Source: Entomortierella parvispora E1425
Taxonomy: Eukaryota > Fungi > Mortierellomycota
Direction of reading: 5' to 3'
DNA: 64,000 nucleotides
NCBI GenBank assembly: GCA_020891255.1
Contig: BQFW01000014.1
Location: 1,426,001 to 1,490,000 of the forward strand
The notes beneath the pieces were generated by a model, which saw nothing but the letters and a program-made list of their open reading frames with translations, had not been told where the DNA came from and searched no databases. Both the position numbers and the translations under genes were made by a program. Numbering within the stretch: position 1 is the first letter of the stretch; the number at the start of each line of letters is the position of its first letter. Of this stretch, positions 1 through 8,600 are shown in pieces.

Positions 1-1154
1 GCACCCAATTCATCCAACGGCTATCAGTGAACACGAAAGCTATTTGTCGTCGAATTGCGCTGTAATGTATTGTACGCACAATGCAGTCTGTTTGCCGTCA
101 GATAGAGGTCGGGGAGACACCTTACTTCTCCTTCTCTTTCTTTTTCTCTACCTCTGTGTCCCGGAGTTCTGAGTCAGCTCTTTGTGATCAGACATCTGCA
201 TCGCAACCGCCAGGTTCCCGTCCGTGTGTTCGATGGATCCACTGATATGTGCTGTATACATGCATGCAGTACCCGCCGCCCCAAGACCCAACCATCTTTC
301 TCGATCTTTGTTTTAGCGCCAACCCAGCCGCCCAGTGTCTCTCCAGCCCCTCTGGGTCAATGGAAGGTTCCATGTCTTCTTTCTGACTCGGGAGAGTGTG
401 TCATTTTAGTTGGGTTCCGTTTTGACGTTCTGGGATTGAAATAATTTTTTTGACATTTTTTTTTTTTTAAAAAAAAAATCACCCTGTCAAAAGAAAAGAA
501 CACCAAGACCCGGGCTCGGAAAGAACCCTCATGGCATCGAAGCTGGAGATAAGTGAGCAAGAAGCACATCTCCTCCTGCCTAAACGAGGAGATGAAATGG
601 GGGGAAGAGGTTGGTGCGGTGCTCTAAAGATCAGGCTCACTCTCTTTGTTTGTCGGATAAAGTTTTTTTTTTGACAGGTTGAACCACTTTGACATTCTGC
701 TATTGACAACGGAGGCGTCGGACCTGTGGCAGGGACCCACGCCTTGCATGAGAAGGGGGGGGGGGGGGTATTCCGCAATGGTGTACCTTCAAGATTTTTC
801 TCACTGACCTGTCAAAAAAAAAGTTGACTCTGGACCACCACGAGGTTGTCAAAAAAGTTGATTGTGAGATGAATCCGATCCCTACGTCAGCCTGTACAGT
901 TCTCTCTGTTCATCCGGACATGAAGCTGCGGAAAAAATGAGAAACTACGGATTGTTTTTCCCCCTAGATATTATTATAGATATCTTCACATAAGCCAAAG
1001 AGAAAAGAGAAAACAATAAGATATGAATTTGTTTGGTTTATTGATGAATTTGTTTCTTGGATGGTATATACACAAAGATATGAAGTGATGGTTGAATGTT
1101 TGGTGAGCGCTAGAGAGGGTGATAGGGCTGAAGGAAGCCTAACAGCTTGGCCAT

Positions 1155-2369
1155 TTATCCGCAACCAGCGCAGCCGCTGGATGAACCATTTGAAGCAGCT
1201 CCATTCTTGGATTGGACCATGACCATGTTCCTCTGTCGCGAGAACACGACCGCGCCCACGCAGAGTCCCAAGATCACGGCAAAGAATAACGCCACGTTAA
1301 AGGTCATGGTAACCAACATAAGCGCGTATCCCAACGTGGTCTCCACAAACATCAACACGGATCGGATCAAGTTCTGGCGCACCTCCCGGGCAGACCAAGG
1401 CTGACGCCACAAGTAGACCCAATTCATCAGGATGGAGCTGGAGCCGGAGGGTCCCACGGTCCTGTTCGAGTTCAACGATACTGAAGTCAAAGGTTCCGAC
1501 GGGCCCGTCTTGGCAGTCTCGGCTTCGGCCTCAATCTCAGCAGCCAATTGCTCGGCCCATTGGATATCCAGGCCGGTACGGTAGGCGGCAATGGTCTGAT
1601 AAAACAGTGTCAAAAAGAAGAGCGCGAACCAAGTGCCAGCGTATTGGCCTGCGGATCGAGGCACCCAAGTCTCAAAGAGGACATAATCCTCAAACCCAGT
1701 GTGGAAATACATCCTCATCTTGGGGGGATTCATGTCTGCACCTCCCACGCCAGCAGCACAGTACTCGGACTGATCAAAGCCCATGCTTGAGGCTGATGGG
1801 GTGCACATAGACTTCCAAGTCGAGCATTGGCTCATCTCTGGCATGGCCTTGCAAAGGATTGCATAGGTACCGAGGGTGTCGCATTCGGCTGCATAGGCGT
1901 TGGGGGCGGGCTTGGGGCAGCGCTCGCATCCAGCCATGTCCATCTCTGTGCAGATACCAATCACAAGAGCGGAGGCACTCTTGGTCGTGGGGAACGACGG
2001 GATCATGGGAGCCTTGGTGCAGATGGTAGCAGTAGAGTTGTTAACTCCACATAGTGCGACGTAGTTCTTGCAGCTGCCCATGCCGGGCATGTCCACAGCA
2101 CAAATGTCGGCCAGGATAGAGAAAGGAGTGCACCATTGATCGGTCTTGTGGCTCGACTGGCAGGAATTGAGGAGCGAGCAGCCAGGCATGTACGGCATTT
2201 GTTTGCAAAGGTCTGCCAGGTTCGCTTGGGTTGTGGCTGCTGGAAGCTCAAAGGAGGCACAGCTTGGATCCCATGGGGTCTTGAGGCAGTCCACGGCTGT
2301 CTGAGCAGACACCAGGACCTGAAGGCTCAATGCTCCAAGAGCCAAGAGGATCTTTGGGGCGGAAAGCAT
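1155..2369 (-). CDS. Ctr-family high-affinity copper transporter with a signal peptide and a Cys-Met (CxxMxxMxxC) ectodomain
   Basis: Intronless ORF; likely start MLSAPKILLALGALSLQVLVSA (ATG at 2369). C-terminal Ctr hallmarks: MRMYFHTGFEDYVLF, TM2 MxxxM (MLVTM), TM3 GxxxG (GLCVG). Ectodomain motifs: CKQMPYMPGC, CAVDMPGMGSC, CTEMDMAGC, CKAMPEMSQC. Confidence 0.93.
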   Translation of the reverse strand: MLSAPKILLALGALSLQVLVSAQTAVDCLKTPWDPSCASFELPAATTQANLADLCKQMPYMPGCSLLNSCQSSHKTDQWCTPFSILADICAVDMPGMGSCKNYVALCGVNNSTATICTKAPMIPSFPTTKSASALVIGICTEMDMAGCERCPKPAPNAYAAECDTLGTYAILCKAMPEMSQCSTWKSMCTPSASSMGFDQSEYCAAGVGGADMNPPKMRMYFHTGFEDYVLFETWVPRSAGQYAGTWFALFFLTLFYQTIAAYRTGLDIQWAEQLAAEIEAEAETAKTGPSEPLTSVSLNSNRTVGPSGSSSILMNWVYLWRQPWSAREVRQNLIRSVLMFVETTLGYALMLVTMTFNVALFFAVILGLCVGAVVFSRQRNMVMVQSKNGAASNGSSSGCAGCG

Positions 2370-3388
2370 CGAGGAAGATGGGCAGGGGTAGCGATAAGAA
2401 CAAAGGGTCGTTTGAGGGGAATGGAGAGAAAGGTATAGTTTGTCTTTGATCGAGGCAATTCCAGGGGTGAGGTCGATTTGACAAGTTGGAATAAAACGGA
2501 ACGAGGGAGGTTTATATAGAGTTTTGTGAATGCATGAATGAGAAAGATTGAGAAAAGAGAATGTCAATCGCCGAGAGATGCGCAGACGAGACGAAGCGGT
2601 CTAGGCAAAAGACGGGAAGAATAAGAAGAACAGGAAGAACAGGGAAGAGGAGTTGCAGTTGGATGGGAGAGAGAGAGAGAGGGAGGAAGGGAGGAGGAAA
2701 AACGTTCGACCAGGGACAGACAGCCAAGGCAATTGAGTTCTGCGAGAGTGGCGATGATGCTGGTGCTGGGACAGGAGAGCGACGGAGCGGGATGTCAAAG
2801 ATGGTCTCGCGGAGAGAGAGGCGAGCGATGGAGACCTGTTCCCTATGTCCTTCATGTCCGCCTGTCAAGTTGACAGAAAAAAATAAACAAAAAAGAGTAC
2901 CTTTCGGGGAATGTCAAACCTGTCAGTTTTTTTTCATATTCACCTGGTATTCAGTCTCTGGGATTGAATCGCTCGGCTGTCTTCCCGACCTTCTTTTATC
3001 GTGATAGAATGAGCTTGAGCTCTCGTGCTTGTCCACCTCTGTCCCCTGTTTGTCTGTCTGTGTGCTGCATCCAGTCAGCCCCGCCCACCTCCAGTTGTGA
3101 TGGATGGCCATTGGCGCGCCCTGCCAAAAGAAGAGGTGCCGTTTGACAGGTATGTCCTTGCCGGTACGACCCACCGCCGCCTGTCAGTTCCCAGGCCGCA
3201 ACTGTCCCCGCTGTTGTCACTTGTCGCCGCCGAAGTCAAAGGTTGTCAAAACACAGACTGAGAGAAACCTCGGATCCATACACCGCTGTTTCTATAAAGA
3301 GAGTGGTCTTTCTTCATTGCCCCGCGCCTTTTCTTGTTTTCAATCCTTACCCCTGCTCACTCATCCAACCTCTCTACATACATTCGCC

Positions 3389-4180
3389 ATGCGTTCTTCC
3401 TTGTTTTTGGCTGCTGCTGCTACCTTGTTGGCCTCCTCTGTCTCTGCTCATCCCGGCCATGACGATGCTGCCTCCGTTTGCTTGACCACCCCCACCGACC
3501 CTTCTTGCTCGACCTTCACTTTCCCTAACGCCACCTTGTCTGCTGCCATCGGCGATATCTGCAAGACTTCCTCCTTCCTTCCCGGGTGCTCTCTCAACAC
3601 CGCCTGCGCCGCTGATGCTTCTTTGCCTGCTACTCAGTGCGCTCCCTTGACGATCTTGGCCACTCTTTGCACTGCCACCGACGATACCGCGGTCACGACT
3701 GCCGTCTGCTCAAAGACCTACGGTGTCTTCTGCGCTGCCAACTCTTTGATCCCCTCCTGCAAGACCCAGGTTGCTTTCCCCGGCTTGCCTTCGGGTAAGG
3801 CTGTCGCCGGAGCTGTCTACTCCATCTGTCAGGAGATGGCTGCCATGACCGACTGCAAGATCTGCCCTGCACCCGACGCCACCGGCTACAGCAGCTGTGA
3901 CCAGGTCAAGGCCTGGAAGGGCTTGTGCTTGGACATGCCCGATATGAAGCAGTGCCCCTCTTACAACGACATGTGCAAGGCAACCCCTTTTGCTCCCTTC
4001 TGCACTGCTGCCTATGTTGCCCCCAGTACTCCAACCACATCTAGCGCACCTGCTCCCAGCCCTTCCGGTGACCACTCTGGCCATGGTAGCGGCAACTCTG
4101 CTTCCTCTGCTTCCTCTGTCATGGCCAGCGGAGCCATGACATTGCTGTCTGTCGCCCTTGCTGGTGCCTTGGCTTTGTAA
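3389..4180 (+). CDS. Secreted, probably GPI-anchored Cys/Met-rich protein paralogous to the neighbouring Ctr ectodomain
   Basis: Signal peptide MRSSLFLAAAATLLASSVSA followed by HPGHDD. Cys spacing is collinear with the Ctr ectodomain (CLTTPTDPSC vs CLKTPWDPSC). Carries CQEMAAMTDC and CLDMPDMKQC, a Ser/Thr/Pro stalk and a hydrophobic C-terminal tail (GAMTLLSVALAGALAL). Confidence 0.85.
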   Translation: MRSSLFLAAAATLLASSVSAHPGHDDAASVCLTTPTDPSCSTFTFPNATLSAAIGDICKTSSFLPGCSLNTACAADASLPATQCAPLTILATLCTATDDTAVTTAVCSKTYGVFCAANSLIPSCKTQVAFPGLPSGKAVAGAVYSICQEMAAMTDCKICPAPDATGYSSCDQVKAWKGLCLDMPDMKQCPSYNDMCKATPFAPFCTAAYVAPSTPTTSSAPAPSPSGDHSGHGSGNSASSASSVMASGAMTLLSVALAGALAL

Positions 4181-5636: not shown

Positions 5637-8600
5637 ATGGACTACGACCCATATAGTCATCATTTCAACGATGATGATGATGCTGTCCAGACAGTACAGA
5701 CCGATCCTCCTCCTCCTCATCCTCCTCCTCACCCTCCTTCCAACATCGAAACTGAGGCTACCCAAGAGCCACAGACTGGTCCACGTCTCCGTCCTTATCC
5801 TCCTTCCAGCATCGATACTGAAGATGTCCAAGAGCCACAGACTGGTCCTCGTCCTCGTCCTCATCCTCCTTCCAACATCGATAATGAGACCATCCAAGCA
5901 CCCCGGACTCATCCTCCTCCTCGCCTTCATCCTCATCCTCATCCTCGTCCTCCTTCCCACACCGATAATGAGGCTGTTCAAGCACCACAGACTCGTCCTC
6001 ATCCCTATCTACCTTCCCACCATCAATATAACCCACTAGTTCCATCCCAACCTCGAGGTCCTCAGTACCCATACTCCCAACCTCATGAGCTTCACCATGC
6101 ATACCATATCCCTGGACAGTATCAATTTCCTCAATATCACTCTCAAGACCCAAATCAACCTGTCTACCACCCACCAGGCCACTTCCATCCATATTCAGAT
6201 GTACCATACAGTCCTTACCCAGGGATGCATCACACCGAATCACACCATACTATGCAGTATTCTACTCTTCCCATTCATCCACAGTATCGCCCTCCTCCCG
6301 GAATGCCCTATGAGCACTACAGAGTACCTCCAACTATTCCAAAGAAACGTCCTGCGGATCAAATCCGTGGTCCAACTCCAGGTGCACCGAGGGCAATTGC
6401 AGATATACACCTTGGGGCTTCGTCCCGAGCCGTATCACCAACTGCCCGAGAGGCTGAAGTTGAGACAACTCCAATGGAACTTTGGAATGCTCGACAAAGG
6501 AATCTGAGTAGAACTTCATCGGTGGCGTCCATTTCACGAGAGCCATCAATGATGTCCGAAGTGGAAATGTACACTCAGGAACAAACGGGCGATAGTACAT
6601 CGTCACCTGTACTCCTTCGGTCAACCCCAGCCTTTTCCGAACCTCCACCAAATGGCGGAGGTATATCCATGACTATAGCAGACTACGAGAAAACACTGAA
6701 AGTGGGCCAGCTCCCACCATATAGTGTGTGCAAGGAGGCCAAGTCTATGCTCGCACATATACCCATAAGGCAGATCGATCTTACGATTCCAGGGGCATGG
6801 CACCGTCATTTCTTTGAGAAGGTGTCAACAACAAATCCTGCCACAATCAACCAGGTTGATCTCCAGCCCACCATCAACGCCCCAACCGTTGATCCATACA
6901 CAGGGAAAAAGTTTCCTTATGTCTCTGACATTCCAAAGGCATGGTTCTTTTGCCGAGTCAAGACTAGTGAGAACCGCAGATGTCACTACCATAAGCCAGG
7001 ATCTCAAGGTACAGGCATGCGTACGGCACATGTTACAAGGAACCATCCAGAAATACTCTCAGCATTGACAACATTCCGAAAAAATCAAGGATTCGAAGGT
7101 AATCTATCTCAATGAATTACTCATAGGTGTACACTATCACATTTTTAACCTATCAAACGTCAATTCATGTAGATGTGGAAGCAGGAAACGCGGAAGGGTA
7201 TTCAGTATTCTATGACCAGACAATGCCAAAGTCCTCGCAGCTGACCAAGATATTGCCGAGTACTCAAGAAGCTATACAGCTATTCACTACTCACAGCGCG
7301 ATTCAACAGAGACTCCCGTTCTCAGTGGTTACTGGCCCGTATGCCTCGGGCGTCGCTAGAATTCTCGGATTTTCATACCCGTCGCCTTCTCCTCAAACCG
7401 TCGGAAAGTGTGTATTCAAGCTTTACGGAAATGCTCGCGCACGACTGGACAAAATATTTGCTGCAGGAGTCGTTCGAGGCTGCTTTACCTACGACGGTTG
7501 GAAGAGATTTGGCCGGAAATTCATCGGGATCACGTTCCATTACATCGAGAAAAAGACCTACAAACCCAAATCTCTGGCGATTGGTTTTGAGGAATACTTT
7601 GGTTCTGGGACGGCTGTTGACATCCAGGATATAGTAGGTAAGTGTGGATGGTAGCTCTGCTTGCCGTCGTCTTTGGCCCTGGCTGCAGCTTGATCTAATA
7701 CAAATCACAACTTCTAGAGCGAACCCTTTTATTTTGGGGGCTAAAAGGCAAGGCCTTTTGCAGTACTACCGACTCCGCCAATGTCATGAAAGCAACAACT
7801 CGACTTTTAATCAACGATGACGAAACTTTTGGTCCGTGGTTTCCCTGTGCCTGTCATAAACTTCAACTGTTTATCCGCAACATCATCGAAGCAACGGGTG
7901 ATATAAAGACTATTGTCCGCAAGGCTGAAGAACACAACAAGGCGTTCCTATCAAGCGGAGGATCAACTCTCCTATGCAAAGCGCGATCCGACTTAAAACA
8001 AAAGGAACTAAAGGCTCTCACATTCACTGTTACGCGATGGAACAGCAGATTCATGATGATAGAGCGCCTTCTGGAGCTACGTGAAGCAACAGACCTGGTC
8101 AAGGCGCGAGCGCAGATGCCTACTGCCACGCAAATGGAGAAGACATTTTGGCGAGAATATGGTAGTCAGCTTCTGAGTAACGAAGAGTTCGATGTTCTCA
8201 AGGAGCTTCTTACTGTCCTGCGACCCACCGCAGAATTGACAGTAGCAATGTCCTCCAACGACCCTGTCATCACAGGCTTATACCCCAAGATCCGCAAGGT
8301 CCTGAGTTCCGACCCTCTGTTGACGATTCCTATTGTGGAGCGGTTCCAAGAAAAAGTTTGTAAGGCAGCTCGCAGGCCTCTTCTCCACAGCTGATATGGC
8401 CGATGAAGTCCTCATTGCCACATACCTCCACCCTACCAATATTAAGAATGATGGATTTTTCACTGGATTGGAAGGAGAAAGACTGAAACAGCTTGCAGAG
8501 GACCTTATTCTTGCAACGGCTGATCCTGAAAGTCCACTGCGCACAGGAATCGACTTTGGGGATAAGTCTACTGAGGATCTCACCACGCTCCTGTCGATGG

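Follow-up and report, generated by a model that had tools for sequence, protein, structure and literature searches.

A head-to-head gene pair for a CTRA-Ctr copper transporter and a stand-alone, probably tethered CTRA protein in Entomortierella parvispora and other early-diverging fungi

The CTR1/CTR2 and CTR3 proteins of Chlamydomonas reinhardtii were reportedly described by Page et al. in 2009. The Cys-rich domain of these proteins was named CTRA, for “CTR-associated”, by Strenkert et al. (bioRxiv 10.1101/2023.10.19.563170). The authors distinguished CTRA-CTR transporters, which include Chlamydomonas CTR1/CTR2 and Dictyostelium P80, from stand-alone CTRA proteins, which include CTR3 and a P80-derived protein. 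They also listed both CTRA-CTR and stand-alone CTRA proteins belonging to “Fungi incertae sedis”, and noted that duplications had been independent (10.1101/2023.10.19.563170). CTR3 is periplasmic and accumulates under copper deficiency; a Chlamydomonas ctr3 mutant showed no copper phenotype (10.1101/2023.10.19.563170). In Cryptococcus neoformans, Bim1/Cbi1 is reported to be a copper-binding protein of the cell surface with a glycosylphosphatidylinositol (GPI) anchor that is induced by copper limitation and works through Ctr1 (PMC9258870; PMC10952591). In Bacillus subtilis, Cu(II) is bound by YcnI and exchanged between this protein and the extracellular domain of the importer YcnJ (10.1101/2025.05.23.655588). 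Here, we describe a pair of divergent genes from the fungus Entomortierella parvispora E1425 that brings together elements of these systems: gene A, which encodes a CTRA-Ctr transporter, and gene B, which encodes a free copy of the transporter’s ectodomain. We discuss the conservation of the pair, its linkage to a gene for a YcnI-like protein, a sequence motif that the three genes share, and possible functions.

The two genes lie in a 64-kb stretch of genomic DNA, which we refer to as “the window” (public assembly GCA_020891255.1, contig BQFW01000014.1); all positions are coordinates of this window, with position 1 being the first letter of the stretch. The start codons of A and B, fixed using the N-termini of orthologs, point away from each other and are separated by 1019 bp. 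Both genes are continuous open reading frames (ORFs) that coincide with the public gene calls and are, therefore, intronless. The original prediction made for this stretch had claimed two divergent, intronless genes about 1 kb apart, with products that align Cys for Cys. Both parts of the claim hold: the ORFs lie where it had placed them (Table 1), and every motif pair it had quoted falls within the BLASTP alignment of A and B (168 aa aligned at 35% identity; composition-corrected E 7e-26). The likeness between A and B is far beyond chance. Each ectodomain has exactly 18 Cys residues. When 21 domains of the two types, taken from several genera, are aligned, Cys is invariant in 17 columns, and the 18th Cys is shifted by a single column. 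B is a free paralog of the A ectodomain.

Residues 220–376 of A match the Pfam Ctr profile over its whole length (PF04145; E 7.1e-34; 118 bits with a cut-off of 25.3; profile positions 1–151 of 151). The hallmarks of Ctr proteins are also present, i.e., Met before the first transmembrane segment (TM1), MxxxM in TM2, GxxxG in TM3, and a C-terminal CxxC, and all are kept in six orthologs. By these sequence features, A is a member of the Ctr/SLC31 copper transporter family, as had been predicted. Upstream of the pore, A has a signal peptide and a domain of roughly 180 residues with four Cys-Met motifs (CKQMPYMPGC, CAVDMPGMGSC, CTEMDMAGC, and CKAMPEMSQC). Gene A is under purifying selection, with ratios of nonsynonymous to synonymous substitution rates (dN/dS) of 0.10–0.16 relative to its orthologs and with dS near saturation. 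An AlphaFold2 model of the A ectodomain is all-helical (mean predicted local distance difference test [pLDDT] score 80; predicted template modeling [pTM] score 0.76). When this model was compared with Swiss-Prot using Foldseek, a single match was significant: residues 25–193 of Dictyostelium P80 (template modeling score 0.80; 41% identity; E 1.4e-11).

Searches of the AlphaFold cluster library with the same model returned many proteins annotated as “copper transporter”, together with several short proteins that have no pore. A profile built from A- and B-type domains matched 643 clusters (50% identity) at E ≤ 1e-3. A Ctr pore is present in 106 of the best 149 of the 643 cluster representatives; roughly a dozen of the 149 are short proteins that have both a signal peptide and a hydrophobic tail. 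Matches to the profile include proteins from two members of the Chlamydomonadales, Volvox africanus (E 1.9e-68) and Haematococcus (E 2.2e-57); further named members come from Cyanophora, the amoebozoan Nolandella, Amoeboaphelidium, and chytrids. A word-indexed profile search with a B-type alignment found only 5 proteins and gave no further taxonomic information. The PDB, searched by sequence and by fold, has no relative of the CTRA domain, and Pfam has no model for it. Judged by the modeled fold and its match to P80, the profile matches to Chlamydomonadales, and the presence of CxxMxxMxxC motifs, the A and B ectodomains both belong to the CTRA family; the original prediction had assigned them to the same Cys-Met family. 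Residues 228–389 of a separate AlphaFold cluster match, A0A507DG15 (“DOMON domain-containing protein”), form a CTRA domain.

Gene B has 28 orthologs in Mortierellomycota, with 56–74% identity; the feature counts that follow cover 29 Mortierellomycota sequences. Two of the four Cys-Met motifs of B are kept (CQEMAAMTDC and CLDMPDMKQC), and the other two are Met-free. The retained Met pairs, those of motifs 3 and 4, are invariant across Mortierellomycota. Gene B is likewise under purifying selection (dN/dS 0.14–0.28 relative to orthologs, with dS near saturation). Using rule-of-thumb sequence criteria for signal peptides and GPI-type tails, a signal peptide is found in all B orthologs with complete N-termini, and the predicted +1 residue of the mature protein is His in 24 of the 25 such orthologs (e.g., SVSA/HPGH and SVSA/HEGPH, where the slash marks the predicted cleavage site). 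A DHSxH motif occurs in the Ser/Gly-rich linker of 19/29 sequences. An uncharged hydrophobic tail with candidate omega residues is found in 28/29; the exception is a mis-modeled gene, whose continuous ORF does have the tail. B is, therefore, most likely secreted and held at the surface by a GPI anchor, in keeping with the earlier description of B as a free, GPI-type copy of the ectodomain. The terminal His motifs of B (HxGH or HxGPH near the N-terminus; DHSGH in the linker), which were gained in Mortierellomycota, are of a kind that would suit Cu(II), and the retained Met-pair motifs 3 and 4 would suit Cu(I).

Two other identities for B were considered. Searched against Pfam, B matches no family at E ≤ 1 except for a chance match to its signal peptide, and the paralogous A ectodomain is modeled as all-helical; we rejected the possibility that B is a Bim1-type protein, i.e., a relative of the X325 family that resembles lytic polysaccharide monooxygenases (LPMOs). 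The original prediction had called B CTR3-like. This description stands in the sense that B is a CTRA paralog without a transporter; what does not stand is orthology with CTR3. B has one domain rather than three, has a hydrophobic tail of the tethered type, falls in a clade apart from the Volvox and Haematococcus domains, and stems from a separate and much older duplication.

To what extent is the pairing of A and B conserved? We compared the loci of B orthologs, including those of six Mortierellomycota genera (this genome, Linnemannia, Mortierella claussenii, Gamsiella, Actinomortierella, and Lobosporangium). In all six, a Ctr gene lies head-to-head with B, 841–1484 bp away. Flanking genes encoding Yippee, BCDHK, and bHLH proteins are also conserved within Mortierellomycota, meaning that synteny inside this phylum is, by itself, weak evidence. 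The same head-to-head pair is found at a spacing of 539 bp in Calcarisporiella thermophila, 726 bp in the chytrid Polychytrium aggregatum, and 491 bp in the monoblepharid Hyaloraphidium curvatum, and all three Ctr neighbors were confirmed to be CTRA-Ctr proteins. In each of these species, the flanks are entirely different. The pair itself has, therefore, been retained, and the conserved head-to-head synteny that the original prediction had proposed looking for exists both within and beyond Mortierellomycota. Conidiobolus coronatus has a B-type gene (L009 8001–8771) that has lost all four Met pairs and has neither a Ctr gene nor a DUF1775 gene (see below) as a neighbor; this copy may have left a copper role. 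Two other arrangements were seen in these loci. Quaeritorhiza haematococci has a second, A-like free CTRA gene (P0037; L012 391–5709) that is divergent from a ZIP metal transporter gene, at a distance of about 2.5 kb. In this genome only, an 867-aa gene with no Pfam match lies between B and the BCDHK kinase gene (window 5637–8394; L001 12249–15006). The 867-aa gene looks like an insertion, since the kinase gene follows almost directly after B in Linnemannia, Gamsiella, and Lobosporangium.

The age of the duplication was addressed using an IQ-TREE phylogeny of 63 CTRA domains. One clade (support 96/86) unites the Mortierellomycota A-types with CTRA-Ctr proteins from Calcarisporiella, chytrids, and Amoebozoa. 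The clade of B-types (96/99) is placed outside the branch (91/88) that contains all A-types, and the free copies of Calcarisporiella, Polychytrium, Quaeritorhiza, and Conidiobolus fall on the same side of the tree as the B-types. A tree constrained to join the A- and B-types of Mortierellomycota is worse by 32.3 log-likelihood units, and the approximately unbiased (AU) test rejects it (p-AU 0.014); on this basis, we rejected an origin of B by recent local duplication of A. By the same test, forcing all fungal free B-types into one clade is compatible with the data (p-AU 0.39). The loss of Met from motifs 1 and 2 is common to the B-types of other phyla, with motifs 3 and 4 kept in most. Shared Met loss and synteny point the same way as the tree, to an old B-type, and the A/B duplication is, as read from these comparisons, older than Mortierellomycota. 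The free copy of Hyaloraphidium groups with its own neighbor (97/94) and keeps Met motif 1; this pair is, therefore, either a recent re-duplication or has been homogenized by gene conversion. A Ctr protein of 614 aa from a Logan assembly (P0093) has two CTRA domains; the first clusters among the free B-types, and the second falls with the A-type of Calcarisporiella. These placements would make P0093 a fused version of the A/B pair; both branches are very long, and the placement is unsure.

A third gene is associated with the pair. Just to the left of the window is a gene that matches the full Pfam DUF1775 profile (PF07987; E 1.9e-33), the family of YcnI. The encoded protein has a signal peptide and a GPI-type tail, and its mature form has an N-terminal His, with the sequence AHVT aligning with the N-terminal HVT of PDB 3ESM. 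A DUF1775 gene lies 1.5–3.7 kb from the pair in 6/6 Mortierellomycota genomes, and about 2 kb downstream of B in Calcarisporiella. Hence, a DUF1775 gene is found beside the A/B pair in seven genomes; in an eighth, that of Quaeritorhiza haematococci, it is found beside a free B-type CTRA gene. In this last species, a 9.5-kb contig (L011) contains a hemerythrin gene, then the B-type gene, and then two tandem DUF1775 genes, and has no Ctr gene. In Actinomortierella, the DUF1775 gene has been relocated to the opposite side of the pair, and its upstream region still has the TGTCAAA sites described below. Directly after the DUF1775 gene of Calcarisporiella is a DOMON/CDH-cyt/cytochrome b561 gene (L007 12267–13576), which may encode a surface reductase.

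The region between A and B, and that upstream of the DUF1775 gene, share a sequence motif. Across the 64-kb window, the densest 1-kb clusters of TGTCAA/TTGACA sites are at positions 2251–3250 (8 sites), between A and B, and at the left edge (7 sites), on the side of the DUF1775 gene; all other 1-kb segments have ≤4 sites, and those with 4 (near 53 kb and 62.7 kb) contain nothing visibly copper-related. An unbiased ranking of 7-mers in the six A/B intergenic regions of Mortierellomycota placed TGTCAAA at the top, with 34 observed and 2.06 expected occurrences. TGTCAAA was also the top-ranking 7-mer in the six regions upstream of the DUF1775 gene (25 observed and 2.25 expected), and it is present in all species of the six-genus set. 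Its density is 5.1/kb in the A/B intergenic regions, 3.4/kb upstream of the DUF1775 gene, and 0.03/kb in other intergenic DNA of the same loci, i.e., a difference of ~100-fold. With only one site in 29.6 kb of other intergenic DNA, TGTCAAA is not a general promoter element. The consensus of the motif is H-TGTCAA-A-(A/C). A literature search combining the motif with copper returned only primers and unrelated matches. The strong enrichment of a common motif in the A/B intergenic region backs, indirectly, the shared promoter proposed in the original prediction. TATA-like boxes are not consistently conserved across the genera.

Three further features of these regions were observed. Purine-rich GAGAGA/AGAAGA tracts are enriched in the divergent promoters (window 2560–2840 and the orthologous regions), with 44 observed and 11.4 expected occurrences of GAGAGA. 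There is a strong switch in GC and AT skew across window positions 2250–3250. Lastly, a second element, ACTCGGGA / CCCGAGTCA, which contains TGACTC, is enriched upstream of the DUF1775 gene in 5/6 genera (ACTCGGG: 10 observed and 0.26 expected); it is not enriched in the A/B intergenic region.

The sequencing runs listed for this stretch are of DNA or of unknown kind, with no RNA run among them; hints about expression come from a comparison of four of these runs. The comparison yielded a DNA contig of 19.8 kb from a relative, which is syntenic with the stretch. In addition, a run of unknown kind, with the same species label, has contigs of 668 and 739 nt, with word depths of 878 and 447, over the body of gene A only. 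These contigs cover positions 1335–2503, are about 87–88% identical to gene A, and are probably transcripts of a diverged strain, which suggests that gene A is transcribed in a relative. The coordinates of all features are listed in Table 1.

Table 1. Positions of the CTRA gene pair, its regulatory region, and the neighboring DUF1775 gene, in window coordinates
Feature	Position	Strand	Basis or remark
YcnI/DUF1775 gene, just left of window	-1272 to -613 (L001 5340-5999)	-	PF07987
TGTCAA/TTGACA array between gene A (3' end) and the DUF1775 gene, n=7	450..853 (450, 485, 671, 689, 703, 810, 847)		
Gene A, CTRA-Ctr copper transporter, 404 aa, intronless	1155..2369 (ATG 2369; stop 1155-1157)	-	ORF, assembly gene call, Pfam PF04145, dN/dS
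Gene A, cytosolic C-terminal GCAGCG (CxxC)	1158..1175	-	identical in 6/6 Mortierellomycota orthologs
Gene A, Ctr membrane domain	1242..1712	-	Pfam, aa 220-376
Gene A, GLCVG (GxxxG)	1254-1268	-	
Gene A, MLVTM (MxxxM)	1305-1319	-	
Gene A, pre-TM1 Met motif MNPPKMRMYFH	1701-1733	-	
Gene A, CTRA ectodomain, aa about 26-206, 18 Cys	1752..2294	-	alignment, AlphaFold2 model, Foldseek
Gene A, four Cys-Met motifs	2178-2207, 2070-2102, 1926-1952, 1824-1853	-	
Gene A, signal peptide, aa 1-23	2301..2369	-	hydrophobic N-terminus ending VSAQ, all orthologs; judged by inspection
Divergent A/B intergenic region, 1019 bp	2370..3388	.	motif-rich
TGTCAA/TTGACA sites in A/B intergenic region, n=8	2478, 2562, 2793, 2863, 2870, 2912, 3143, 3244	.	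motif scan
TATA-like boxes	2510-2519 (for A), 3290-3299 (for B)		
Palindrome CTGTCAAGTTGACAG in A/B intergenic region	2862-2876		
Gene B, stand-alone, predicted tethered CTRA protein, 263 aa, intronless	3389..4180 (ATG 3389; stop 4178-4180)	+	ORF, gene call, orthologs
Gene B, signal peptide, aa 1-20, then predicted mature HPGH (3449-3460)	3389..3460	+	-3/-1 rule
Gene B, CTRA domain, aa 29-207, 18 Cys	3473..4009	+	alignment
Gene B, motifs 1 and 2, no Met	3560-3589, 3668-3709	+	
Gene B, motifs 3 and 4, CxxMxxMxxC	3827-3856, 3926-3955	+	
Gene B, DHSGH motif in Ser/Gly-rich linker	4070..4084	+	DHSxH in 19/29 orthologs
Gene B, uncharged hydrophobic C-terminal tail, GPI-signal type, preceded by small residues	4118..4177	+	28/29 orthologs

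We consider it reasonably probable that A, B, and the YcnI-like protein form a co-induced surface copper-capture system that feeds the transporter. A would be a plasma-membrane Cu(I) importer in which an 18-Cys, all-helical ectodomain with four Met-pair motifs sits on a three-helix Ctr pore. B is an old paralog of the ectodomain alone, which has kept the full Cys scaffold and the last two Met pairs and has lost the first two. The two genes would have been head-to-head since before the divergence of Mortierellomycota, Calcarisporiella, and at least one chytrid lineage. Copper limitation, to which CTR3 and Bim1 respond by induction, would probably be the condition that switches on the A, B, and DUF1775 genes together. 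At the surface of the wall and membrane, copper would then be captured by B and the YcnI-like protein, with the terminal His motifs of B taking Cu(II), and its two Met pairs holding Cu(I). After reduction at the surface, copper would be passed to the Met motifs of the A ectodomain and on to the pore.

Several observations weigh against a copper-capture system of this kind. The 18 Cys residues of B are probably all disulfide-bonded, and just two Met pairs are left, making the copper capacity of B uncertain. Loss of CTR3 in Chlamydomonas has no copper phenotype, so free CTRA proteins are possibly dispensable or redundant. No TGTCAAA site occurs between the paired genes of Calcarisporiella, Polychytrium, or Hyaloraphidium; this candidate element is, therefore, specific to Mortierellomycota. 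The run with deep coverage of gene A has, at ≥85% likeness, nothing on B except a 56-nt piece. If this run is RNA, A can be expressed without B, although B may simply fall under the likeness limit. Lastly, similar composition following the loss of Met could have contributed to the grouping of B-types in the tree, and support within the B side of the tree is weak.

There are other ways in which the pair might be explained. B could be a surface copper buffer or brake that sequesters copper, limits or times its entry, or protects the cell at high copper, and that is perhaps co-expressed with A for safe uptake. The loss of the first two Met pairs and the gain of His motifs can be read as a shift toward Cu(II) binding over Cu(I) delivery, and the lack of an uptake defect in the Chlamydomonas ctr3 mutant also speaks for a buffer. 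However, Met-pair motifs 3 and 4 of B have been kept under purifying selection, CTR3 accumulates in copper deficiency rather than excess, and the tight, ancient linkage of B to an importer fits acquisition at least equally well; overall, we think a buffer unlikely. We give still less credence to a role for B outside copper biology, as a Cys-knotted GPI wall protein with a structural or adhesive function, or one that involves another metal. The invariance of Met pairs 3 and 4 across Mortierellomycota and the gain of His motifs that are typical of copper sites speak against such a role, which would also make the linkage to two other copper genes and the shared promoter motif hard to explain. It would, by contrast, account for the loss of half of the Met motifs, for the Conidiobolus copy that has no Met pair and no Ctr neighbor, and for the second free CTRA gene of Quaeritorhiza, whose head-to-head partner encodes a ZIP transporter and not a Ctr protein.

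It is similarly improbable, in our view, that the head-to-head layout is a neutral relic of an inverted duplication, that the motif is a regional or general promoter feature, and that A and B have no functional coupling. Synteny is generally high in Mortierellomycota, as illustrated by the conserved Yippee, BCDHK, and bHLH flanks, and, as Hyaloraphidium demonstrates, a copy in this orientation can be of recent origin or can be homogenized by gene conversion. A relic would not, however, be expected to persist in Calcarisporiella and Polychytrium, where all flanks differ. The pair also survives the Actinomortierella rearrangement, in which the DUF1775 gene moved together with its motif array, and the finding of a single TGTCAAA site in 29.6 kb of other intergenic DNA is difficult to reconcile with a general promoter feature. 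We favor the co-induced copper-capture system as the explanation for the pair.

A broader proposal is possible, and we make it tentatively. Early-diverging fungi may have an ancient, clustered, three-part extracellular copper relay made up of two GPI-tethered proteins, namely a YcnI-type Cu(II) binder and a stand-alone CTRA protein, together with a CTRA-Ctr pore. The head-to-head core of this relay, formed by the CTRA and Ctr genes, would predate the split between chytrids and Mucoromycota/Mortierellomycota, and the Mortierellomycota cluster would be driven by one copper-responsive element, TGTCAAA. The original prediction had also held that the arrangement was undescribed in fungi, which is true in part. 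The text of the CTRA preprint has no mention of adjacency, synteny, divergent genes, GPI, or disulfides, but stand-alone fungal CTRA proteins are already reported there (10.1101/2023.10.19.563170), and the novelty of the proposed system is reduced because free copies, fungi included, were already covered. Within the literature searched, an ancient subfamily of presumably tethered B-type proteins, the conserved head-to-head placement of their genes beside that of the transporter, the linkage to DUF1775 genes, and the candidate cis-element appear new.

In these fungi, the gene for a free, probably tethered CTRA protein is linked to a transporter gene across phyla. The A, B, and DUF1775 genes offer a defined set for single and combined knock-outs. 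Mortierellomycota are widespread in soil and in association with plants, and TGTCAAA is a candidate cis-element through which their copper regulator and regulon might be found. The B-type domain, with Met lost from motifs 1 and 2 and His gained, and the A-type domain form a natural comparison for how CTRA domains handle Cu(II) and Cu(I).

Among the closest known systems, that of Chlamydomonas is similar in its parts. CTR1/CTR2 resemble A in that a Ctr pore is joined to a Cys-rich CTRA domain bearing CxxMxxMxxC motifs, and CTR3 resembles B in being a transporter-less paralog with a signal peptide that is exported and proposed to aid copper acquisition. However, CTR3 has three CTRA domains and is derived from a duplication of CTR2, whereas B has one domain and goes back to a separate, old duplication within fungi. 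Unlike CTR3, which is soluble and periplasmic, B has a GPI-type tail; B has also lost Met from motifs 1 and 2 and has gained the terminal His motifs. The algal genes are regulated by CRR1, which is part of a different system. P80 of Dictyostelium discoideum (Q7YXD4) is like A in having a single N-terminal CTRA domain on a Ctr protein, and it is the best match to the A ectodomain in structure and sequence. As with the fungal pair, a one-domain, soluble, free CTRA paralog exists in Dictyostelium (10.1101/2023.10.19.563170); in contrast to the fungal pair, it is amoebozoan, and the free copy is described as an independent duplication.

Two systems resemble the proposed mechanism more than its parts. 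Bim1 and Ctr1 of Cryptococcus are like the proposed relationship between B and A, with a tethered extracellular partner serving a Ctr importer. Bim1 has the LPMO-like X325 histidine-brace fold, whereas B is unrelated to it, being a paralog of the transporter’s own ectodomain. The ycnKJI genes of B. subtilis are like the fungal cluster in that the gene for a membrane-tethered DUF1775 protein lies beside a copper importer gene. The bacterial genes form an operon with a repressor and a CopC/CopD-type importer, whereas in the fungi each gene is its own transcription unit, the importer is a Ctr protein, and there is a CTRA partner in addition. If the three-part relay proposed here is true, it would represent a eukaryotic equivalent of the ycnKJI operon of bacteria.

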